Numbered from the whole stretch's first letter, positions 28,967 through 39,874 are shown. The stretch is DNA of 63,451 nt, filler included, from Salisapilia sapeloensis CBS 127946 (GCA_023334545.1; 16 parts of 16 records of this genome joined end to end with filler, not necessarily neighbours in it); one strand, 5' to 3'. Numbers and translations: made by a program. The notes: a model not told the origin generated them from the letters alone.

Positions 28967-31900
28967 ATGGACGCCGCTAACTTACACAACATCCTCTTGC
29001 ACACCTTCAGCAATGACAACGCTGCTCGTAATGCTGCTGAAGAAGCCATCAAGCAGCTTCACTTGACACCAGGCAGCCTGCAGCTGCTCGTGCAGGTCGC
29101 GATGGAAGACAATGTCAGCCGTGAAGTCCGCCAGGCTGCTGCCGTGCAGCTCAAGAACATCGTGCAGCGCTACTGGGAAGGAATGGATGATAAGCAGGGC
29201 AACCTGACCCCAGCCTTCTCGGATGCGGACAAAGCTGGGTGTCGCCAGAACGTACTCGAGGTACCCATCCATCTATCCGTCCGTACTATGCGATTTATAT
29301 TCATAACGATCTATTTCAGGCACTCTTTGTATCGGAAGACAGCTCTGTGCGTGCTCTGCTTGCTGAGACCGTTGCTTCAATCGCTCGTCTCGACTTCCCC
29401 GTACGAATAGCTATTCTCCTTTTATCTTCTTTTCATTTATTAAAAGTCATGTGACTACAGGACCACTGGCCGAACCTCATTGATGAGATCTGCAAGAACG
29501 TGCAAAGCAACCATGCTACACGTATTATCAACGTACAGTCTTCACATTGGTGTCGTAGAATTTTTTCGCTTACTCATCCCATTCATAGGCTCTTCTCGCC
29601 CTCCGTCGTGTCGTCAAGAACTTTGAGTACCGCGCAGATGAGGTACAGCACGACACTTTATCTTGTATAAAGTCTATACTAATCAACTATCTCTCGACAG
29701 CGTCTCGGTCCACTCTTTGCGCTCGTGGAAAGCGTCTTCCCGATGCTCCATCAGATGCTAACGCAGCTCCAGCAAAATTACTCGCTTGAGTCGGCCCACA
29801 TGATCCACCTCATCCTCAAGTCCTACTGGTCGTGCGTAAAGTGCACTCTACCTCCGTTCCTGGCGCAAACGCCACAGGTCCTCACGTGGATGCACTCGCT
29901 ACGTGACATCGTCGCACAGCCGCTGCCTGAAGCCAGTGAAGGTGGCTTGCCTGCTGGTCAGCCGACGGATGAAGAAGAGCGTGAGAACTGGCCTTGGTGG
30001 AAGCTCAAGAAGTGGGCGCTCCAGATCCTCGTGCGCTTTTACTCTCGCTACGGGAACCCGAAGAAGGCAGAGGACCAGTACGCTGAAATGAGCACTGTCT
30101 TCCGCAACCAGGTGGCCCCGGAGCTCGTGCCTACGATCTTGGACACGCTCGCTTTGCGCAAGAATGGCCGCTTCTGCACCGACCGAGTCGTGCAGCTCAG
30201 TCTCGTCTTCATGCAAGAAGCTGTCGACTCGAGCGTCACGTACAAGGTGCTGAAGCCGCACCTCGGGTTCCTCATCTTCGAAGTCATCCACCCCGTGCTC
30301 TGTCTGACGCAAAAGGATCTGCAGCTATGGGCAGAAGATCCGCATGAGTTTGTCCGTCGCACGAACGACGTCTTTGAAGACTTCTTGGACCCTGTTTTCG
30401 CTGCCTCGAACCTCTTGGCAGACCTGTGCACGAAGCGTGGGAAGGACTGCTTGCCGCAGGTGCTCCAGTTCTACAATGACATCTTGACCAAGTACGCCAA
30501 CACGCCGGAAGCCGAGCGTGACTACATCCAGAAGGACGCTGCGTTACATGCACTCTTTTCACTCGACACGGTGCTCACCAAGAGCTCAGCGCATAAAGCT
30601 CAGGTGGAGCCCATGATTGTGAACCACATCCTGCCAGAGTTTAAGAACCAGCATGGGTTCTTGCGACTTCGTGCCTGTCGTGTCTTCTCACGTAAGTACA
30701 TTGAAGGCATCCGGTTCGAAAATGAGCAGACGCTTGTGAGCATCGTCGAAGGTGTTCTCGACTGTATGTTCGACCCGGAGCTGCCTGTACGTATTGAAGC
30801 AGCTAAAACCATTCGTTTTGTCGTTATGTACCCGCACTCGGACACGGTTGTCGATGTGCTGCGTCCGCGATTGCCGCAGATCCTCGAACAGTTCTTTAGT
30901 CTGATGGACGAGATTGGAAACGACGAAGTTGTGGTTGCGCTTGAGCACATTATCGACCGCTTTTCGGACGAAATCGCACCTTTTGCACTGCAGCTCGTGT
31001 CCAAGTTCGTCGAGTTCTTCCAGCAGTTCACCGCTGCGTCGGAGGATGATGAAGATGCTTCCTTAGCTGCTGTCTCTTGCCTCGATGCGATCAACACGAT
31101 CTTGATGAGTGTCCACAACCAGCCAGAGCTCTATGCGCTCATGGTACCGACGTTGGCGCCTGTTGTCCAGCGCATTCTGACGGACTTTGACTACGTCGAG
31201 TACATGGAGAGTGGCATCGACATCCTCGGCTCGCTTGCATTCTACAGCCACAAGATCACGCCGGCGCTGTGGGAGCTTTTCCCACTGCTCTTCTCTTCCT
31301 TCCAGGGATGGGCAGCTGACTACTTGACCAACTTTGTGCCAGTGATCGATAACTTTGTCGGTCGAGACGTAGATGGCTTCTTGGCTGGTGCTGCCACGGA
31401 CCCTCAGACGGGTGCCCAGATCCGGTACTTGGAGCTCGTGTTCAACATGGGCAAGAGTGTGTTCGATGGTGACTACTCTCAGGAAGTAGACGTCTGTGCT
31501 GCCTGCCGTCTGTGGTACTCTCTCCTCCACAACTGCTTTGGCAAAGTGGATGAGTGCGTGCCTCCGATCGTTCACATGGTCTGCGCGCGTCTGTTGAAGC
31601 CTGTGCAGGAGAACGAGAGCGAGGACTCGACAATCCGCAGTCTCTTGGGTGTCGTCGGCAGCCTCTTCCACTACAACCCGGCGCTGACGATGGCGGCGCT
31701 CGAGAATTTGAACGCTGTCGATGGTGTGTTCAAGATCTGGCTCATGGACCCCGCTCGCTTCGACTCGTTCCTTGACCGCAAGCTCTTTGTTCTTGGTATC
31801 ACGTCGCTGCTCAAGCTACCGGTCGAGAAGATCCCTGCATCGTTGCGTCCGCACATGAAGCAGATTGTCCAAGCCGACATGAGTGTGCTCGCGCATTCGA

Positions 31901-32319
31901 TCAAGAACCCTCGTCCGGGTATTCAGCCAGAGGAAGAGGAAGGCGAAGACCTTGGCGCCGGACCGGAGAACTTTGAACAGTTGCTTGATGCCGGTGGATA
32001 TGACTCTGGAGAGGACGCCGAAGATGTCATGGATGACCAGTACTATGAGATCTTGAAGCAGTTGAGAGAGGAAGCTTCTCTGGACACGCAGTTCATGTAC
32101 GACGACGATGGTGACGACGACTATGCGAGTTTGTTGGATGAAGTGGATGAAGTTGAGTTCTTCCTGTCGACGCTGCACAACTTTGCACAGGCTCATCAGG
32201 GTGAGTACCAGAGCTTGCAGTTGGAAGCCGATCCGGAGTGCCAGCAGATGCTAGCGTTCTTCCAGGAAGAGCACGCGAAGCGACAGAAGCGAAAGGCTGA
32301 AGGAGAGCAGGCTCAGTAA
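28967..32319 (+). CDS. IPO7: Importin-7/8 (SAD2/Nmd5-like karyopherin beta), multi-exon
   Basis: IBN_N (RQAAAVQLKN), WPWWKLKKWA, LWAEDPHEFVR, GFLRLRAC, ELPVRIEAA, acidic C-terminal region; introns near 29259-29320, 29400-29460, 29533-29588 and 29642-29700. Confidence 0.92.
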
Positions 32320-32426: not shown

Positions 32427-33798
32427 CTAGTTCGTTCCGTCGTACGTCGCTGCTGGATCGAACTTGGCATTCCGGTGCTTCCGGAGGCATTTCGTGCCAC
32501 AGTAGACGAACTCGAATTTCGAAAAGTACTCGCCTTCGATCGGCTCAAAGTCCTTGTTGCAGACACTGCACTTGATCCAGTGCTTGGGGACTTCAGCAAG
32601 AGCTGGTGGGGTGTACCACGCTAGCAAGTCGACTGGGTTTCTACGTACGATTTGGTCCCACAGTATCGGGAAATCGGATACTTGAAGCTGTGCTTCGAGT
32701 CGACGTTTAAACCAAGTGGACAGGTATGCGTATCCACCTCCGCCAAAGCGCCGGTACTGGACTCGTTGCGTGATGTTTGTAGAAAGCAAGAGCTTGTCTG
32801 CGCAGTCATGTTGGATGAGTTTAGCAATGCATTTTGCTATGGATGCATCGGATGGAGGTGGTATTTCATTCGGAAGGAAGGAGGAGCGGGAAGCTAGAGC
32901 AGTAGGGACTAGGAGAGGATTGATAAAGGTCATGTCGGAGACCGCGTAGTGCCCGATAAAGTTAAAAGCTAGTCGAACTCCACTGCTGCACAAGTCTTTT
33001 AGAAAATCGACGCGGTCAGACCATCGGTCGGCATGACAAATGACTAGTTGTCCAGCTGAAGCTCCGACGGTGATGAGCTCTTGGATCCAGGTCTTGATTG
33101 CGATCTCAAACAGAGATGGAGTCATCAAACCATTATCGCCATTTGAAAAGGACAGAAATACTGGCGCATTCGTTCGTGACTGAGCCTACAGGTTGCATAC
33201 TGTCAGTGGTGATTGGTAGAAGTATGTGTATCAAGCCTACCGATGCTATAATCTGAATAAGCGTTCGATCGGTCGGAGAGAGGTCTACATTCAAGATGTG
33301 GATCTGTTGATAGATAGCACCAGCTCCGCCATCCTCCTTTGACGATGAACGAAAGCCAAAATTAAGTTCGTTCTCTAATTGAGCAGCAAGCTCTGAGATA
33401 GTCTGATCATTCGCTTTGCCAGTCTCATGCAGCTTGGCTTTATCCACCGTGGTGACACTGACGATCGGCACGTCGAGTCGCTTTGACAAGGATTGGAGCG
33501 ATCCGTGCAGCTCATTCCTACCCTCTTGCGGCAAGGTGACGTCAATGATTAGAGGTGATGACTCGATATCTTGCAAAGCTTGTAATTCACGATACGCAGG
33601 GTCCTCTCGATCCATGATAAGGTTCCGACCGTCATTGTGCATTGGCTGCTGACGATATGCAATGCGCTCTTCTACGTCCAAATCCGACCCATTCATCCTC
33701 CCACCAATTCGATGCAATACATGTTCATGCGGTAGTACGAAACGCACTTGAGTTGGCGCTACACTACCATTCACAGTCCTAATGAGCTTATCCATCAT
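32427..33798 (-). CDS. Phosphotriesterase-related (PTER-like) fold protein with a C-terminal zinc finger (2 exons)
   Basis: IRTVNG..VLPHEH, IIDVT, CHADR, YRRFGGGGYAYL, NPVDLL; 54-bp intron 33240-33187 gives ...IIAS|AQSRTNAPVFLS; C-terminal CSVC-x19-YCGTKC. Confidence 0.82.
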
Positions 33799-33921: not shown

Positions 33922-36267
33922 ATGCTGCTCCGTCAGACACGCGTGGCATCGCTACGACGATCTGCATTGTCTAGTGCCTCTGTGCAACATTTCCATGGCG
34001 GCTTTAACCGTGCGCCTTCCCAAGCTGCGACGAAGCAGGTGGAAACACTGCGACCTGTGGGTGGTGTCCAGCCACTGAGCCTCCGGTCGCCAGTCTTCCA
34101 GATCTATGGTGCCAACACTGACGTTGGCAAGACGGTGGTGTCTGCTGGTCTATGCCGTAGTGCTGTCAATGCCTTCGACAGTGTCGAGTACATTAAGCCA
34201 CTGCAGACGGGCACAGCTGATGAAGCTGGAGACGCTCCGTTCATTCGCAACCATTGCCAGAGCAATGCACTTAATACGTCCACGCTGCATACGTGGAGGA
34301 CGGCTGTGTCTCCTCATTTAGCAGCAGACAAAGAGGGTCACGCCTTAACGGATGAAGATCTGCTCGCTTCCTTGCAAAAGAAGCTGCAAGAGGTCCAAGG
34401 CGCCGGACTGACGTTCGTCGAGACGGCTGGTGGCGTCTTGAGTCCATCAGCATCGATGCGTCCACAAGCAGACGCATACAGGTCGCTTCGACTACCTGTG
34501 GTTCTAGTCGGCGATGGCAAACTCGGTGGCATTTCCACCACGCTGTCGGCTGTCGAGAGTCTTGTGCTGCGTGGATACGACATAGCCGCCGTGTGCTTGA
34601 TCGAGCAGGACGGACTGGACAACATGGAAGCCATGCAGTCACGTCTGGAAGAGCTAGGCGTGCAGGCGTTTACGATGGACGCCCTGCCTCCTCAGCCTGA
34701 GCCATTGGACCAGTGGTTCAAGTCGCACGAAGCTTCGTTTGACAGTGTGATTCGATCTCTCCAAGACTTCCACTCGAACCGTCTCGACCGACTCCGTAAC
34801 ATGCAGGAGAATGCCGAGAAAGTGTACTGGTGGCCATTCACTCAGCATAAGACGTACGGATCGCTGTCCATCATTGACTCAGCTCATGGAGATGACTTTA
34901 GCATCTACCGACCAGAGTCCCAGCAACTCGAGCCTTCCTTTGACGCTTGTGCGAGTTGGTGGACGCAAGGTATTGGCCATGGCAACAGCAAGCTGGCGAC
35001 ATCTATTGCGTACGCTGCTGGTCGCTACGGCCACGTCATGTTCCCTGAGAACGCACATGAGCCTGCGATGCAGCTGAGTCAGAAGCTCGTGGAGACCGTC
35101 GGGAAGGATTGGGCGACGCGTGTCTACTTTTCCGACGACGGCTCTACGGCCGTGGAAGTAGCGCTGAAGATCGCTTTCCGAAAGTTCTTACGTGACCAAA
35201 AGCTCCAGTACGAGACTTTTGATACCAACGCACCAAAGCTAGTGGTGCTTGGACAGACGAACTGCTACCATGGTGATACGCTCGGTACGATGAATGTAGG
35301 CGAGCCGAGTGTCTTTAATATGCAGCAGCATCCGTGGTACCGGGCGGAAGCATGCTTCGTCGATCCGCCATCTGTGGCGTTGCGAGATGGCAAGTACAGT
35401 ATCTCGGTTGCGCCGGAGCTAGGGGTGCCAGAGCACTTGACACAACAGACGTACGATACGTTAGAAGAAGTATTTGATGCCGCACGGAACGATCCGGAGT
35501 TGATGACAGCTTATCGAGCATACATCTCTGGCATGATTGAGTCGACGGAGGCCAAGTCTGGGGATGGAAATGGCGTGCGAGTAGGAGCGACGGTGCTGGA
35601 ACCAGTGCTGATTGGCGCGGGTGGTATGATCATGCTAGACCCAGTGTTCCAACGAGCAGTGGTGGAGGAGAGTCGTAGTCGAGGCATTCCTGTAGTCTTC
35701 GATGAAGTCTTCTCTGGCTGGTGGCGCCTCGGTGTCCAGAGCGGACGCGACTTGCTTGGTGTGAACCCGGATATTGCATGCTATGCAAAACTCTTGACGG
35801 GTGGTGTGGTACCGATGGCTGTGACGTTGGCATCGGAAGAAGTGTTTGAAAGCTTTTTAGACGATGAAACGCTCCAGGCTTTGCTCCATGGTCACTCGTT
35901 CACGGCGAATCCGATCGGATGCGCTGCTTCCATCGCGTCGTTGGACGCGTACGATTTGCTGACGGACGCTCAAGGCGAGACGACGACGCCGAGACACTAT
36001 TGGGACCCAGCTATCCTCAAGGAACTGTCCGAGATGGACAATGTCGAACGGACGTTTGGTATCGGTACGGTCATGGCCGTGGAGCTCAAGTCGTCGGACC
36101 CGGGATACACATCGAAAGAGGCGAAGCATTTGATTGCGAGCTTAAGACAGACGCAGAACATTTACGCTCGATCTCTAGGCAACGTCGTCTACTTTATGTG
36201 TTCTCCTTTGACGACGCAGCAGGACTGTCAGCGTCATCTCTCTCGCTTGCGACAGGAGCTTGAGTAG
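33922..36267 (+). CDS. BIO3-BIO1: Bifunctional dethiobiotin synthetase / DAPA aminotransferase with mitochondrial-type presequence
   Basis: GANTDVGKT P-loop, KPLQTG, VETAGG, LVGDGKLGGISTT (BioD); WWPFTQH, DACASWWT, SDDGSTAVEVALK, YHGDT, VFDEVFSG, CYAKLLTGG (PLP lysine), LHGHS (BioA); R/S-rich N-terminus; intronless. Confidence 0.96.
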   Translation: MLLRQTRVASLRRSALSSASVQHFHGGFNRAPSQAATKQVETLRPVGGVQPLSLRSPVFQIYGANTDVGKTVVSAGLCRSAVNAFDSVEYIKPLQTGTADEAGDAPFIRNHCQSNALNTSTLHTWRTAVSPHLAADKEGHALTDEDLLASLQKKLQEVQGAGLTFVETAGGVLSPSASMRPQADAYRSLRLPVVLVGDGKLGGISTTLSAVESLVLRGYDIAAVCLIEQDGLDNMEAMQSRLEELGVQAFTMDALPPQPEPLDQWFKSHEASFDSVIRSLQDFHSNRLDRLRNMQENAEKVYWWPFTQHKTYGSLSIIDSAHGDDFSIYRPESQQLEPSFDACASWWTQGIGHGNSKLATSIAYAAGRYGHVMFPENAHEPAMQLSQKLVETVGKDWATRVYFSDDGSTAVEVALKIAFRKFLRDQKLQYETFDTNAPKLVVLGQTNCYHGDTLGTMNVGEPSVFNMQQHPWYRAEACFVDPPSVALRDGKYSISVAPELGVPEHLTQQTYDTLEEVFDAARNDPELMTAYRAYISGMIESTEAKSGDGNGVRVGATVLEPVLIGAGGMIMLDPVFQRAVVEESRSRGIPVVFDEVFSGWWRLGVQSGRDLLGVNPDIACYAKLLTGGVVPMAVTLASEEVFESFLDDETLQALLHGHSFTANPIGCAASIASLDAYDLLTDAQGETTTPRHYWDPAILKELSEMDNVERTFGIGTVMAVELKSSDPGYTSKEAKHLIASLRQTQNIYARSLGNVVYFMCSPLTTQQDCQRHLSRLRQELE

Positions 36268-36336
36268 CTTAAGAAGGAAAGTAAACGACATTGAAAAGTC
36301 TTGTGTATATTGGCAGTTGAGAATATAGGAAAGTTG

Positions 36337-36699
36337 TTAAGAAATGATACAAGCTGGAGGCTGGGCTTGAGTAGGCTGACGGTTACGCTCGGATGTGACG
36401 CGCTCGAGCTCTTTCATCGAGACGGTGTAGCATCGGATGAAGGCTTCGCGGTTATCCAAGGCGTGGACGGTACGATCATGGATGAGCCGATTACGACAAC
36501 TTGCGAGGTACCGGAGAGACTTGACGGTCGTCGACGGAAGGTCTCCCTCGATATCTGAGACCTTTTCATGCAAGCCTTTGCCACCAGCGTGGAAATTTTC
36601 TTCGAGGTAGCTTTCCGCTTCTTTCGTAAGGACGATTGCTAGCTCGTAGTCATTGCTAGAGTATTCCACTTGAGGTTCGCGGGACTGTGCTGCTCCCAT
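36337..36699 (-). CDS. Small HEPN-superfamily (DUF4145-like) protein with N-myristoylation and CaaX motifs, 120 aa
   Basis: MGAAQS (G2, S6); core EAESYLEENFHAGGKGLHEKV...LRYLASCRNRLIHD with R-x4-H; ends CIIS-stop; intronless. Confidence 0.8.
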   Translation of the reverse strand: MGAAQSREPQVEYSSNDYELAIVLTKEAESYLEENFHAGGKGLHEKVSDIEGDLPSTTVKSLRYLASCRNRLIHDRTVHALDNREAFIRCYTVSMKELERVTSERNRQPTQAQPPACIIS

Positions 36700-37933
36700 G
36701 CTTAGCTCCCTCGCGTCTTGGAGTACTATGGGAGGCGTTTAACGTCGATGTGCAAGAACAAATTAGCTTGAAGGTATATATGTGGAGGCAGGAATTGAGA
36801 AAGAGAACCTTGTGGTGTTAAGAGGAAAGGATGAGTCGTTGTGGAGTGTGAAGTAGCCGAGGCCTCAAGCATTCGCTTACGAACGAGGTGTCCGATTCGA
36901 GGTAGAAATGCTCACTAGTGCTGTTTTTGATAACCATATGGAATTGCTGGCTACTTTGATTTGTAGGAAGTATGCTTGTGCTACATGTAGAGACGACGAA
37001 GGGATCTGATGTTGGAATGATATATTAGTAGAGGAAGTAAAACTGTCGAGGTTTGTCATGCATAGATCGAGATAAGAGCCATCTTGTCATTCTTATCGTT
37101 GCTGTAGAGATGCATTCTCGTCAAACTGTTTCTTTCTTCTGTACATGTAAATTTGTAGCTGTAGGAGATGTCAATCCGGGTACACGATGAGCTAGTGGAG
37201 CGATGGAGATACCCTGCTAGTCGTACATTTCCGAGTCTCCGTTTATCCACATCAAGTGAACTGATGACTACGCTAAGATCAATGGACTCTTCCTTACACT
37301 CCACCTTGCTTCATTCAGTATTCAAACACAATATATCTCCATTTAAACTGCTAGACAATGCTCTATCCTGTAGTAGATTCTAGAGCTTACAAGACTGGAT
37401 GCATGCTCCAGCACCTTTCGATGATCTTCTCACGCATGAAATTCGAACAAGCCAGTTTGAAATTCAATCGAACAAGTTTTTTATCCGTCTGCGGATTGAC
37501 GGAATTCAAGTCTGTCACACTTGTGATTGGTGAACGTTTCAAAAATTTTGGCGCGAGATCGTAGTCATCGAAAAAGGGCACTTCGAACCGGCGACGGATC
37601 GGCTGCAAGGTCCATCAACGCCATCACCAGCGCAACCTCTTCTCCAAGAACATCACGTCCTTCGGTTCCTACGTGTATCCTGTGCAATTGACAAGCACGA
37701 TATCACGTACTCTTGCCGGTATTGCCGTTTTCGCATTTCGATTCTCCCGCGAATTCACACATTGAAGAAGACGTCCCATCTTTATCTACTTGATCGCTCG
37801 TTTTATCCAGACTAGTACATACAGACGTAAGGATATATGTAAGCAATACGGTGGTCCCCTCCATGTAGCACCACGTTGTACCACACGCCGTTATCAGATA
37901 CACAGACACTTATTCTATCTTGGACAGACAAGC

Positions 37934-39874
37934 ATGCCAGGTGATGACGAGAGCTCGTTCATGAGCCCTACAAAGGTGCAATCAGCTTCCGCGATAAACC
38001 CAGCAACACCAGCAACAGTAAGTAGAATCCTATTGCTCCAACTTCTTCTAAACACACTTTCTGACTCTTCATCTCCTAGTCGCGCACTATTCGCGTAGCA
38101 GATCCAAGTCCGAATCGAACGGAAGCTGCTGCTGCTATGTTAAACCTACTGGCAGCTCCCCCAGCATCACAAGATCTTGTGGCACATACGGTAGAAACCT
38201 CTTTACATCGATGTATGCAAGGAAGTACTCATCCGTATGCACAGCCAGCGCAACCACAAGAGACAAAGGCAGCTTCTACGCCCGTAAAGAAGCGCGGGAG
38301 CTCAGCGAAACGCAAGTTAGCCAAACCTCCGGTGAAGAAACCCAAGGCACAGAGCAAGAAGACGAGTAAAAAAGTAGCTGGCTCTGGCAAAGACGAAGTG
38401 AACGGACTGAACGACTCGATGGAGCATTGTGTTATGAGCGGAAACGAATCTGAGACATCTGCGAAGAAGACTAAGAAGAAATGGACGACCGGTCAAGGTG
38501 TCCAATGCGTTCCTTATCGCGAGTACAGTCGCAAGGACAAGTCTCTCGGTCTACTCGTCGAAAAGTACGTTTCGTATCGATGTTTATTGAAGGTACGCTC
38601 TAAGTCGTCATAGCTTTTTGAAATTATACGAAGCGAGTGGCGTATCGGAGATCTGTTTAGATCACGCCGCGCAGGAGCTTGGTACGTTCTTCTCGCTCTT
38701 GTAGGAGTACGCGTAGCTTATACATGAGCTAGATGTTGGACGACGGAGAATTTATGATATTGTGAACATTCTTGAGAGCATCCATCTCGTCAGTCGACGG
38801 AGTAAGAGTTGGTACAATTGGCATGGACTTGAGGCACTACCGACGTCAACTAGTGCCATGAAGGTATATTCTTATAGCATCCTGTAATCGAGAGGTGAGA
38901 GTAACATGGAGGATGGTAGGAATTATTTGCCGAGATGAAGAGAGGTGACGCTTACTTGCGCAAGTAGATCGACACGATATCTAACGTCTTCGTTTTCCTT
39001 GATACAGCATCAAATAGTCTACTGGTAGAAAATGGTCGGAGGAGGGAGCGTGGCTCCTTGTGTAAGCTCAGTCGCATGTTCGTCGAACTCTTTCTTGAGG
39101 AGGTGCGATGTCTTCTACATTCTCAAGCGACTACATCTGATTGTATACCATAGGAGAATTGTATCATCCCGTTAGATGATGCTGCAAAGCAACTAGTCGA
39201 AGAAGATGACGATACGATTGAAGACCGCGCTTTAAAAAGTAATTCTTGTAGTGAAGACGATGACGACGGTAGCTGACGTTGTACTAGCCAAGACACGTCG
39301 ACTATACGACGTCGCTAATGTCCTCGTGAGCGTTGGTTTGATTGAAAAAGTCCGCATGCCACACACGCGCAAGCCAAGCTTTCGATGGAAACATCGATCT
39401 GGCGCTCCTGTACTTGCAGAGGAGCGTCTGACGCAGCCGGAAGAAGAGATGGAGACGGCGGATGATGTCGAGATGAAGAGTCACGCCGTGGAACCAGACG
39501 CTGCTGTTGTTACCTCCCAGTCGTGCGGAAGTGATATCGTAGACGACGCGAAGGAGACGGAAGCTCGGAAGAGGCCGCTGACGAGTGAGACGCATGCGAC
39601 TGACGCTTCACCTCAGGTAGAAGCGTGGAAAAGAGTGAAAGTTGATCATGATGGTGTCGCGCCACAGATGCTGCGCTTTAATCCTGCTACGCACTCGCCA
39701 GTGCACCCGAATGTAGTGCTGGAAGAAGAGCAGACGCGTGTGAGTCGATACTTGGAGAATTATATTCGCGAATATGTCGATTATACTGGCCGAGGTCAAG
39801 TGCGAGAGGGCGAGCCGTCGACACAACTGGCCGAGTGGGCAGCGAATATGGCGAGAGACCACGACCGTGCCTAG
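37934..39874 (+). CDS. Atypical E2F (E2F7/8 / DEL-like) with two DNA-binding domains, multi-exon
   Basis: [71 protein letters not shown], assembled across short GT-AG introns. Confidence 0.85.

Follow-up and report, generated by a model that had tools for sequence, protein, structure and literature searches.

We found that the small open reading frame at 36337-36699 of the analysed Salisapilia sapeloensis DNA (the window, 63,451 nucleotides at full length, filler included) represents a genuine oomycete gene that is both spliced and expressed, and that its product of 120 residues belongs to a large family with a predicted HEPN-like fold, in which the eukaryotic members carry putative lipidation signals at both ends and the bacterial members a putative transmembrane tail. 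Taken as a whole, the best explanation is probably that of a vertically inherited, membrane-tethered HEPN ribonuclease of DUF4145-like type, acting as a homodimer, whose kind of anchor differs between bacteria and eukaryotes. We rate the large, uncharacterised HEPN family and its anchor architecture as new; what was already known is that some members bear a DUF4145 label in databases (RefSeq and UniRef call them "DUF4145 domain-containing protein").

A Spliced and Expressed Oomycete Gene

The gene lies on the minus strand of the window and comprises the following parts.

36337..36699, minus strand: coding sequence, 120 codons plus stop (36337-36339); full-length relatives are equal in size
36726..36808, minus strand: spliceosomal intron of 83 nt, GT..AG, in the 5' leader; joint seen in contigs X1-X3 and X5
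36809..36908, minus strand: exon 1 of the 5' leader, to the limit of the transcript contigs
36293..36336, minus strand: 3' untranslated region, to the limit of the contigs
36870..36872, minus strand: upstream AUG, in frame after splicing, adding 30 residues

For positions 34500-38500, transcript contigs were mapped from three runs (X1-X3) that belong to a single study. Each of these runs contained a contig of about 530 nt that covered 36293-36725 joined to 36809-36908. The contigs of the adjoining plus-strand gene had three GT..AG joints, and the intergenic stretch 36912-37447 was nearly devoid of contigs. Because of the GT..AG joints in the gene and in its neighbour, and of this nearly empty stretch, the three runs were taken to be transcript assemblies. 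For a second organism, closely related to the source and represented by four studies from 2025 (run X5, mapped to 34500-37821), the transcripts were 95-99% identical and the leader intron was identical in position. The first-pass annotation had described an intronless open reading frame of 120 residues. The length and the intron-free coding sequence were borne out, but the gene as a whole does have an intron, confined to its 5' leader. A chance reading frame or bacterial contamination was rejected on account of the spliced transcript together with the oomycete synteny described below.

Conserved Motifs and Putative Lipid Signals

A profile search of 1.84 billion representative sequences recovered 827 relatives at E <= 1e-10 and, with the threshold relaxed to E <= 1e-3, 1475; named members were added by a word search with a 43-sequence profile. 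The eukaryotic members include oomycetes (Phytophthora palmivora, P. ramorum, Bremia lactucae, and Aphanomyces spp.), diatoms (Nitzschia and Seminavis), green algae (Parachlorella, Micractinium, Ostreobium, and Pyramimonas), the chytrid Globomyces, Nannochloropsis, Chromera, and Rhodomonas, with cryptophytes represented. Conservation was read from a eukaryotic alignment (A2) and a bacterial alignment (A3), and the motifs of the window protein are as follows.

36679..36699, minus strand: N-myristoylation consensus MGAAQSR, residues 1-7; M1 and G2 never vary, and 41 of 48 dual-motif sequences have Ser at position 6
36640..36654, minus strand: NDYEL (residues 16-20), opening helix 1; N16 invariant, D17, E19 and L20 at least 90% conserved; predicted interface
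36613..36615, minus strand: helix-1 glutamate E29; at least 90% conserved in A2, invariant in the bacterial A3; predicted interface residue
36562..36582, minus strand: GKGLHEK loop, residues 40-46, second family signature; G-x-G-L-H conserved in eukaryotes and bacteria, in 155 of 183 CaaX-ending relatives
36478..36495, minus strand: HEPN Rx4H motif RNRLIH, residues 69-74, end of helix 3; R69, N70 and H74 invariant, in 177 of 183 CaaX-ending relatives
36340..36351, minus strand: CaaX box CIIS, residues 117-120, farnesyl type; C117 invariant

M1, G2, N16, K26, R69, N70, H74, and C117 were invariant in A2, where the relatives are only 34-49% identical, and the R, N, and H of RNxxxH were invariant in both A2 and A3. 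The majority of the stored relatives (183 of 270) had a CaaX ending, mostly of the farnesyl type: X was S, M, C, A, or Q in 169 of the 183 and L or F in 10, while the a2 position was I or V in 165. Among the same 183 sequences, 141 started with MG and 133 with MGxxx[ST]. The myristoylation consensus was found at the right distance from the domain in 154, and most of the exceptions were reading frames extended too far 5' of an internal MGxxxS. Positions 7-15 of the dual-motif sequences were free to vary. The earlier reading had placed a myristoylation site and a CaaX box at the two ends of the protein, and an intact R-x4-H with an upstream glutamate in its core. Both ends conform to consensus, MGAAQSR fitting the PROSITE-type pattern G-{EDRKHPFYW}-x(2)-[STAGCN]-{P} with a permissive residue 3, Ser at 6 and no Pro at 7, and both core elements are conserved in A2 and A3, and the counts above also confirm that G2/S6, the CaaX box, and Rx4H are co-conserved among orthologues. 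A CaaX box with X = S is of the farnesyltransferase type, and CIIS is also the C-terminus of yeast Ras2. To our knowledge, an N-myristoyl and a C-terminal farnesyl signal together on one small domain are rare. Judged from the alignments, the motif set of the 120-residue protein is far beyond chance, and the putative lipid motifs are a family hallmark of the eukaryotic members.

Other endings and lengths were also seen. The metagenomic sequences P0085, P0090, P0103, and P0112 are among the relatives in which the protein starts with MGxxxS but ends, in place of a CaaX box, in a hydrophobic helix or a polybasic tail, and the Chlorellales members start with MGQCLS, a possible myristoyl and palmitoyl site. 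The anchor mode of the family seems, from such variants, to have been repeatedly tinkered with. Longer relatives occur as well (P0099 of 800 residues, P0104 of 477, P0036, P0074, P0124, and P0083); some of them carry two RNxxxH-bearing domain copies per chain, and P0083 has an N-terminal CxxC-type start that recalls the zinc-finger-plus-DUF4145 layout of RAZR.

Predicted Fold, Dimer, and Family Assignment

An AlphaFold2 model built from five sequences (pLDDT 83.2, pTM 0.72) had four helices, at residues 17-36, 43-49, 56-74, and 84-107. The model was compared exhaustively with 48,161 PDB representatives. HEPN proteins stood at or near the top of the ranking: the best match was 2hsb, a HEPN domain protein of A. 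fulgidus (Z 9.6, rmsd 2.8, 95 residues aligned), on a scale on which Z scores of 8-10 are possible for generic helical bundles. The other matches included HepS (9oik, Z 8.7), a HEPN toxin (7ae2, Z 8.5), the T. thermophilus protein ttk003001694 (1wwp, Z 8.5), SO_3166-SO_3165 of Shewanella oneidensis, which contains a HEPN toxin (5yep, Z 8.1), TT1696 of T. thermophilus (1ufb, Z 8.1), and the HEPN domain of sacsin (3o10, Z 7.9). The top-ranked Foldseek matches in the PDB were HEPN proteins too, yet every E-value was above 0.1. In the ESM Atlas, TM scores were 0.64 for DUF4145, 0.65 for HEPN, and 0.59 for HepT.

Sequence comparison gave fainter signals. The window protein alone matched nothing in Pfam, NCBIfam, or PADLOC, a scan of bacterial and eukaryotic members against NCBIfam was likewise negative, and an exact look-up of the 120-residue protein in public assemblies returned no match. 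When the PDB was searched by sequence, both with the window protein by itself and with the A2 and A3 profiles, the matches were at chance level only; the lone sensible alignment placed RNRLVHE of the HEPN toxin 7ae9 on RNRLIH, with an E-value of 0.39. In Pfam, DUF4145 was the commonest match, always below threshold; it appeared for 29 of the 83 members scanned (13 of the 43 from eukaryotes and 16 of the 40 from bacteria), and a HepT-like family came next, also below threshold (8 eukaryotic and 9 bacterial members). None of the members scanned reached the gathering cut-off of DUF4145 (PF13643), 23.1 bits, the best being Ostreobium at 22.0. The proposal of a DUF4145-like HEPN protein was thus upheld as to the nearest Pfam family and the HEPN-like fold, but not as to membership proper. 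Our verdict is that the fold is probably HEPN-like and that the family would be placed in the HEPN superfamily, nearest to DUF4145 but not as a formal member of it. The superfamily's Rx4-6H motif, usually R-N/H/D-x-x-x-H and located where helix 3 ends, has its counterpart in RNRLIH, and the acidic residue expected in helix 1 is E29. The family is set apart by two signatures of its own: NDYEL, with which helix 1 opens, and GxGLHEK, in the loop that follows this helix.

A homodimer was predicted with an ipSAE of 0.46, against 0.00 for the best control, with a partner pLDDT of at least 81 and agreement between runs in at least 88% of the contacts, a result that may reflect memory of solved HEPN dimers. 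In the calibration of this dimer test, made mainly on microbes, 21 of 30 solved homodimers but 0 of 23 solved monomers scored at or above the mark. The predicted interface is formed by helix 1 (residues 14-30) and residues 72-79, and includes N16, E19, K26, E29, and H74, in line with what a HEPN composite site would require.

A Putative Tail Anchor in the Bacterial Relatives

A scan of GTDB genomes yielded 193 loci, and the 80 best of them were retained. These 80 were mainly from Planctomycetota (Gemmataceae, Phycisphaeraceae, Pirellulaceae, and Brocadiaceae), with many Vibrio and other Gammaproteobacteria, and their products matched the window protein at 38-42% identity along 82-97 residues. 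In the relatives without a CaaX box, the domain starts at once (MSDIEL...) and a hydrophobic stretch stands at the end. Such a C-terminal stretch was present in 53 of 78 non-CaaX representatives; among the best 80 loci, a hydrophobic 17-mer followed the domain in 75 of 79 complete genomic copies, and the median distance from this stretch to the C-terminus was 8 residues. We regard it as a predicted C-terminal transmembrane tail anchor. The membrane tethering that had been proposed for the window protein thereby gains independent support from its bacterial relatives. Because the bacterial members have a tail anchor where the eukaryotic ones have lipid motifs, membrane attachment would be the constant of the family, and only the device would differ.

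The Gemmata-like copies L014, L018-L021, and L027, from Gemmataceae and other Planctomycetota, share a conserved INKGCFGLVL that opens the tail anchor; its Cys, immediately ahead of the hydrophobic residues, is invariant. The mobilizable E. coli plasmid NZ_CP145633.1 (L090), Col(MG828) of 2,078 bp, encodes only a family member and an HTH protein; this member, at 1065-1499, has 144 residues, the motif RNKAVH, and a C-terminal hydrophobic tail, and may offer a handle on toxicity or on a plasmid-related function.

Phylogeny and Gene Order

In a maximum-likelihood tree of 75 rows and 106 columns, unrooted and of limited resolution, a single branch (97/90*) separated all the lipid-motif (eukaryotic) sequences from the others, and the window protein grouped with Phytophthora and Bremia (96/90*). 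The surroundings of the gene in the window are listed below.

28967-32319, plus strand: importin-beta/Cse1-like gene, split over two open reading frames
32427-33798, minus strand: VATC (Vms1-associated) domain gene; the order bioDA-VATC is common to P. ramorum
33922-36267, plus strand: fused BioD-BioA (dethiobiotin synthetase / DAPA aminotransferase), the convergent neighbour
37563-38500, plus strand: expressed gene; its three introns, short and of the GT..AG type, lie at 37827-37927, 38018-38079, and 38190-38243
39251-39871: E2F/DP winged-helix domain

The reading-frame piece 38137-38610 had no match in Pfam. The BioD-BioA protein of the window was 58-61% identical to those of Phytophthora, Pythium, and Globisporangium, and 50-54% to those of Albugo, Aphanomyces, and Saprolegnia, which places the source among the oomycetes on the peronosporomycete side, at some distance from every genus sampled. 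Its stop codon and that of the HEPN-like gene are 70 nt apart, and the 3' ends of the two convergent transcripts overlap by no more than about 30 nt, the bioDA transcript (plus strand) running to 36295-36321 and the HEPN-like one (minus strand) to 36289-36295. In P. ramorum (L088), the orthologue lies tail-to-tail with bioDA, about 3 kb off, with the VATC-domain gene beyond, as in the window; in Bremia, the orthologue and bioDA are four locus tags apart.

This synteny with bioDA in P. ramorum and Bremia points to vertical inheritance within the oomycetes. Because the eukaryotic sequences form one clade in the tree, which being unrooted gives neither direction nor date, we favour a single origin of the eukaryotic form over an oomycete-specific acquisition. 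The clade covers several eukaryotic supergroups, and the oomycete gene would have a common origin with the algal and chytrid copies. The first-pass annotation had proposed a horizontal acquisition; a recent transfer into oomycetes is countered by both the tree with bacterial homologues and the Phytophthora synteny.

Alternative Readings

A fuller form of that earlier proposal is a toxin-like bacterial ribonuclease, acquired horizontally, lipid-anchored by oomycetes, and deployed in defence, for instance against viruses that replicate on membranes; we consider this quite improbable. The bacterial relatives are indeed 38-42% identical to the window protein, but the lipid-motif sequences of oomycetes, diatoms, green algae, the chytrid, Chromera, and cryptophytes make up one clade, the synteny of the window copy with Phytophthora speaks against an oomycete-specific transfer, the core is slow to evolve, and the transcript was found in ordinary transcript assemblies. 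While a HEPN fold with an intact Rx4H is typical of toxins and abortive-infection nucleases, and the closest characterised DUF4145 domain, that of RAZR, is a phage-defence ribonuclease, no MNT antitoxin, restriction-modification, or defence gene stood beside the bacterial relatives in the few loci read in detail. The neighbours there were MFS, acyltransferase, DUF2500, YhhN, and MarC genes in Vibrio, and UvdE, Pup ligase, glutamine synthetase, and HEAT-repeat genes in Planctomycetota, long antisense reading frames that overlap planctomycete genes having been set aside as high-GC artefacts. One neighbourhood is shared by 25 Vibrio loci, and a partner gene common to several phyla was not found. 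One relative does sit on the 2-kb E. coli Col plasmid, but relatives occurred on only 6 of 72,556 plasmids, mostly megaplasmids, and the phage collection had no match to the family. A toxin-antitoxin module was rejected, as no partner gene was present at the bacterial loci read. The gene behaves like a conserved housekeeping or stress gene and not like a mobile toxin.

Two further alternatives, each unlikely in our estimate, concern the activity of the domain and the start of the protein. The domain might have a HEPN-like fold without being a nuclease, and serve as a membrane-bound adaptor or as a binding module for a small ligand such as a nucleotide, after the model of nucleotidyltransferase substrate-binding domains, sacsin, and MtlR/YggD. 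Structural neighbours of this kind (MtlR/YggD, the DrrA nucleotidyltransferase-associated domain, and the sacsin HEPN domain) were found at Z 7.5-8.2, the missing antitoxin would fit a harmless protein, and we know of no counterpart of the strictly conserved GxGLHEK loop among HEPN catalytic motifs. However, the R, N, and H of RNxxxH remain invariant across bacteria and eukaryotes and lie, in the predicted dimer, at the interface, where active HEPN ribonucleases have them, whereas inactive HEPN families usually drop this motif (Anantharaman 2013, PMC3710099). As for the start, the spliced leader contains the AUG at 36872-36870, 90 nt 5' of the MG codon and in frame with it, with no stop between; according to the scanning model, ribosomes normally initiate at the first AUG that they meet, and the main product in the source organism would then be a protein of 150 residues, farnesylated only, in which MGAAQS is internal and an unused relic. 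Yet the context of the upstream AUG is of the poorest kind (C at both -3 and +4), as compared with A at -3 and G at +4 for the MG codon. Moreover, the 30-residue extension is not conserved: it has no counterpart 5' of the P. ramorum or Bremia orthologues, where in-frame stops and no AUG are found just upstream, while the exact myristoylation consensus has been kept although the relatives are only 42-49% identical. We therefore read the arrangement as probable leaky scanning past the upstream AUG to the MG codon, with a caveat that stands for the source species.

Proposed Mechanism and Implications

Under the preferred reading, that of a membrane-tethered HEPN ribonuclease, the window gene would encode a small four-helix protein of the HEPN superfamily, most likely a homodimer. 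The two Rx4H motifs (R69, N70, and H74) and the helix-1 residues N16, E19, K26, and E29 would come together at the interface in a composite site of the sort found in HEPN ribonucleases. In eukaryotes, the dimer would be held on the membrane by two lipids, a myristoyl group (MGxxxS) some 13 residues N-terminal to the domain and a farnesyl group some 10 residues beyond helix 4; in bacteria, the C-terminal transmembrane tail would hold it there, and the eukaryotic members would have swapped this helix for two lipid signals. Facing the cytosol on the membrane surface, the dimer may cleave RNA nearby, and the anchoring would confine the reach of an otherwise dangerous nuclease. Our analysis shows the gene with its transcript and intron, the co-conserved motifs, the similarity of fold, the bacterial tail anchor, the phylogeny, and the synteny, whereas lipidation itself, dimerisation in vivo, ribonuclease activity, a substrate, and a physiological role are inferred. 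Experimental backing for catalysis comes solely from RAZR, a different DUF4145 protein. We also put forward, tentatively, a broader hypothesis: the family may be an ancient membrane-surface ribonuclease module of bacteria and eukaryotes, for which anchorage is obligatory, and whose transmembrane helix gave way to N-myristoyl and C-farnesyl groups on its entry into, or retention in, eukaryotes.

If this broader hypothesis is true, a dual-lipid domain of 120 residues would be a nuclease architecture so far undescribed, and oomycetes, algae, and chytrids would have a hitherto unrecognised way of degrading RNA, controlling its quality, or restricting viruses at membranes. The stand-alone HEPN domain appears to be regulated merely by its site of tethering, and the anchor would have been exchanged between domains of life while the catalytic core stayed 38-42% identical between the window protein and the bacterial copies. 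The family could serve as a test case for how anchoring controls a potentially toxic ribonuclease, for the evolution of membrane-targeting signals, and for the processing of RNA at membranes in protists, Vibrio, and Planctomycetes, and it offers hundreds of natural sequences for the study of double anchoring.

Comparison with Known Systems

HEPN nucleases are central to CRISPR systems (Cas13 and Csm6), toxin-antitoxin modules, and abortive infection, as well as to Ire1 and RNase L. In the searchable literature, the architecture described here and its conservation are undescribed: no paper there joins HEPN with myristoylation, CaaX, prenylation, or tail anchoring, and the literature searched held no lipidation, localisation, or nuclease assay for any member of the family.

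The nearest relatives in kind are DUF4145 proteins. In RAZR, the DUF4145 domain was shown by experiment to be an R/H-dependent HEPN ribonuclease that cleaves single-stranded RNA in phage defence (PMC13017515). Like DUF4145 (PF13643), the family has a predicted helical HEPN-like core, in which "...R-x-x-RN-x-x-x-H" ends a long helix. Unlike DUF4145 and RAZR, it has no zinc finger and no fusion to a restriction enzyme or helicase, stays below the Pfam cut-off, possesses NDYEL, GxGLHEK, and a predicted membrane anchor, and had no defence context at the loci read. The likeness to the HepT/MNT type VII HEPN toxins (7ae2, 5yep, and 6m6u) lies in size (about 120-150 residues), the four-helix fold, RN-x-x-x-H, and the location of the motifs at the dimer interface, which for the window protein is that of a predicted dimer. 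In contrast to these toxins, its bacterial relatives have no adjacent MNT at the loci read, the protein would be membrane anchored, and its HepT-like Pfam matches are below threshold.

Membrane-associated HEPN proteins of bacteria have been described before. Anantharaman et al. (2013) distinguished three such groups, one of which overlaps DUF4145 and one of which occurs in Planctomycetes, and proposed that they process RNA at the membrane (PMC3710099, section 15). The bacterial members of our family would resemble them in having their HEPN domain in the cytoplasm and fixed to the inner membrane, but their own layout, an N-terminal HEPN domain with a single predicted C-terminal tail anchor, differs from the three architectures of those groups (an N-terminal transmembrane segment with a WP signature; a transmembrane segment after a helical domain; two transmembrane segments with a C-terminal zinc ribbon). 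A lipidated eukaryotic counterpart, or one from algae or oomycetes, is not mentioned in that paper (PMC3710099). For the exchange of anchors, the Rheb GTPases provide an analogy, limited to the anchoring mode since their fold and function are unrelated: between lineages they swap prenylation, N-terminal myristoylation/palmitoylation, and transmembrane segments, and in some protist Rhebs N-terminal acylation was added to the prenylated C-terminus (PMC5869587). The idea of a membrane-held HEPN ribonuclease acting on local RNA is shared with the KEN domains of Ire1 and RNase L and with C6orf70 (PMC3710099, section 9). Whereas those are large, multidomain transmembrane proteins of another HEPN family, the window protein is a stand-alone domain of 120 residues with predicted lipid anchors.
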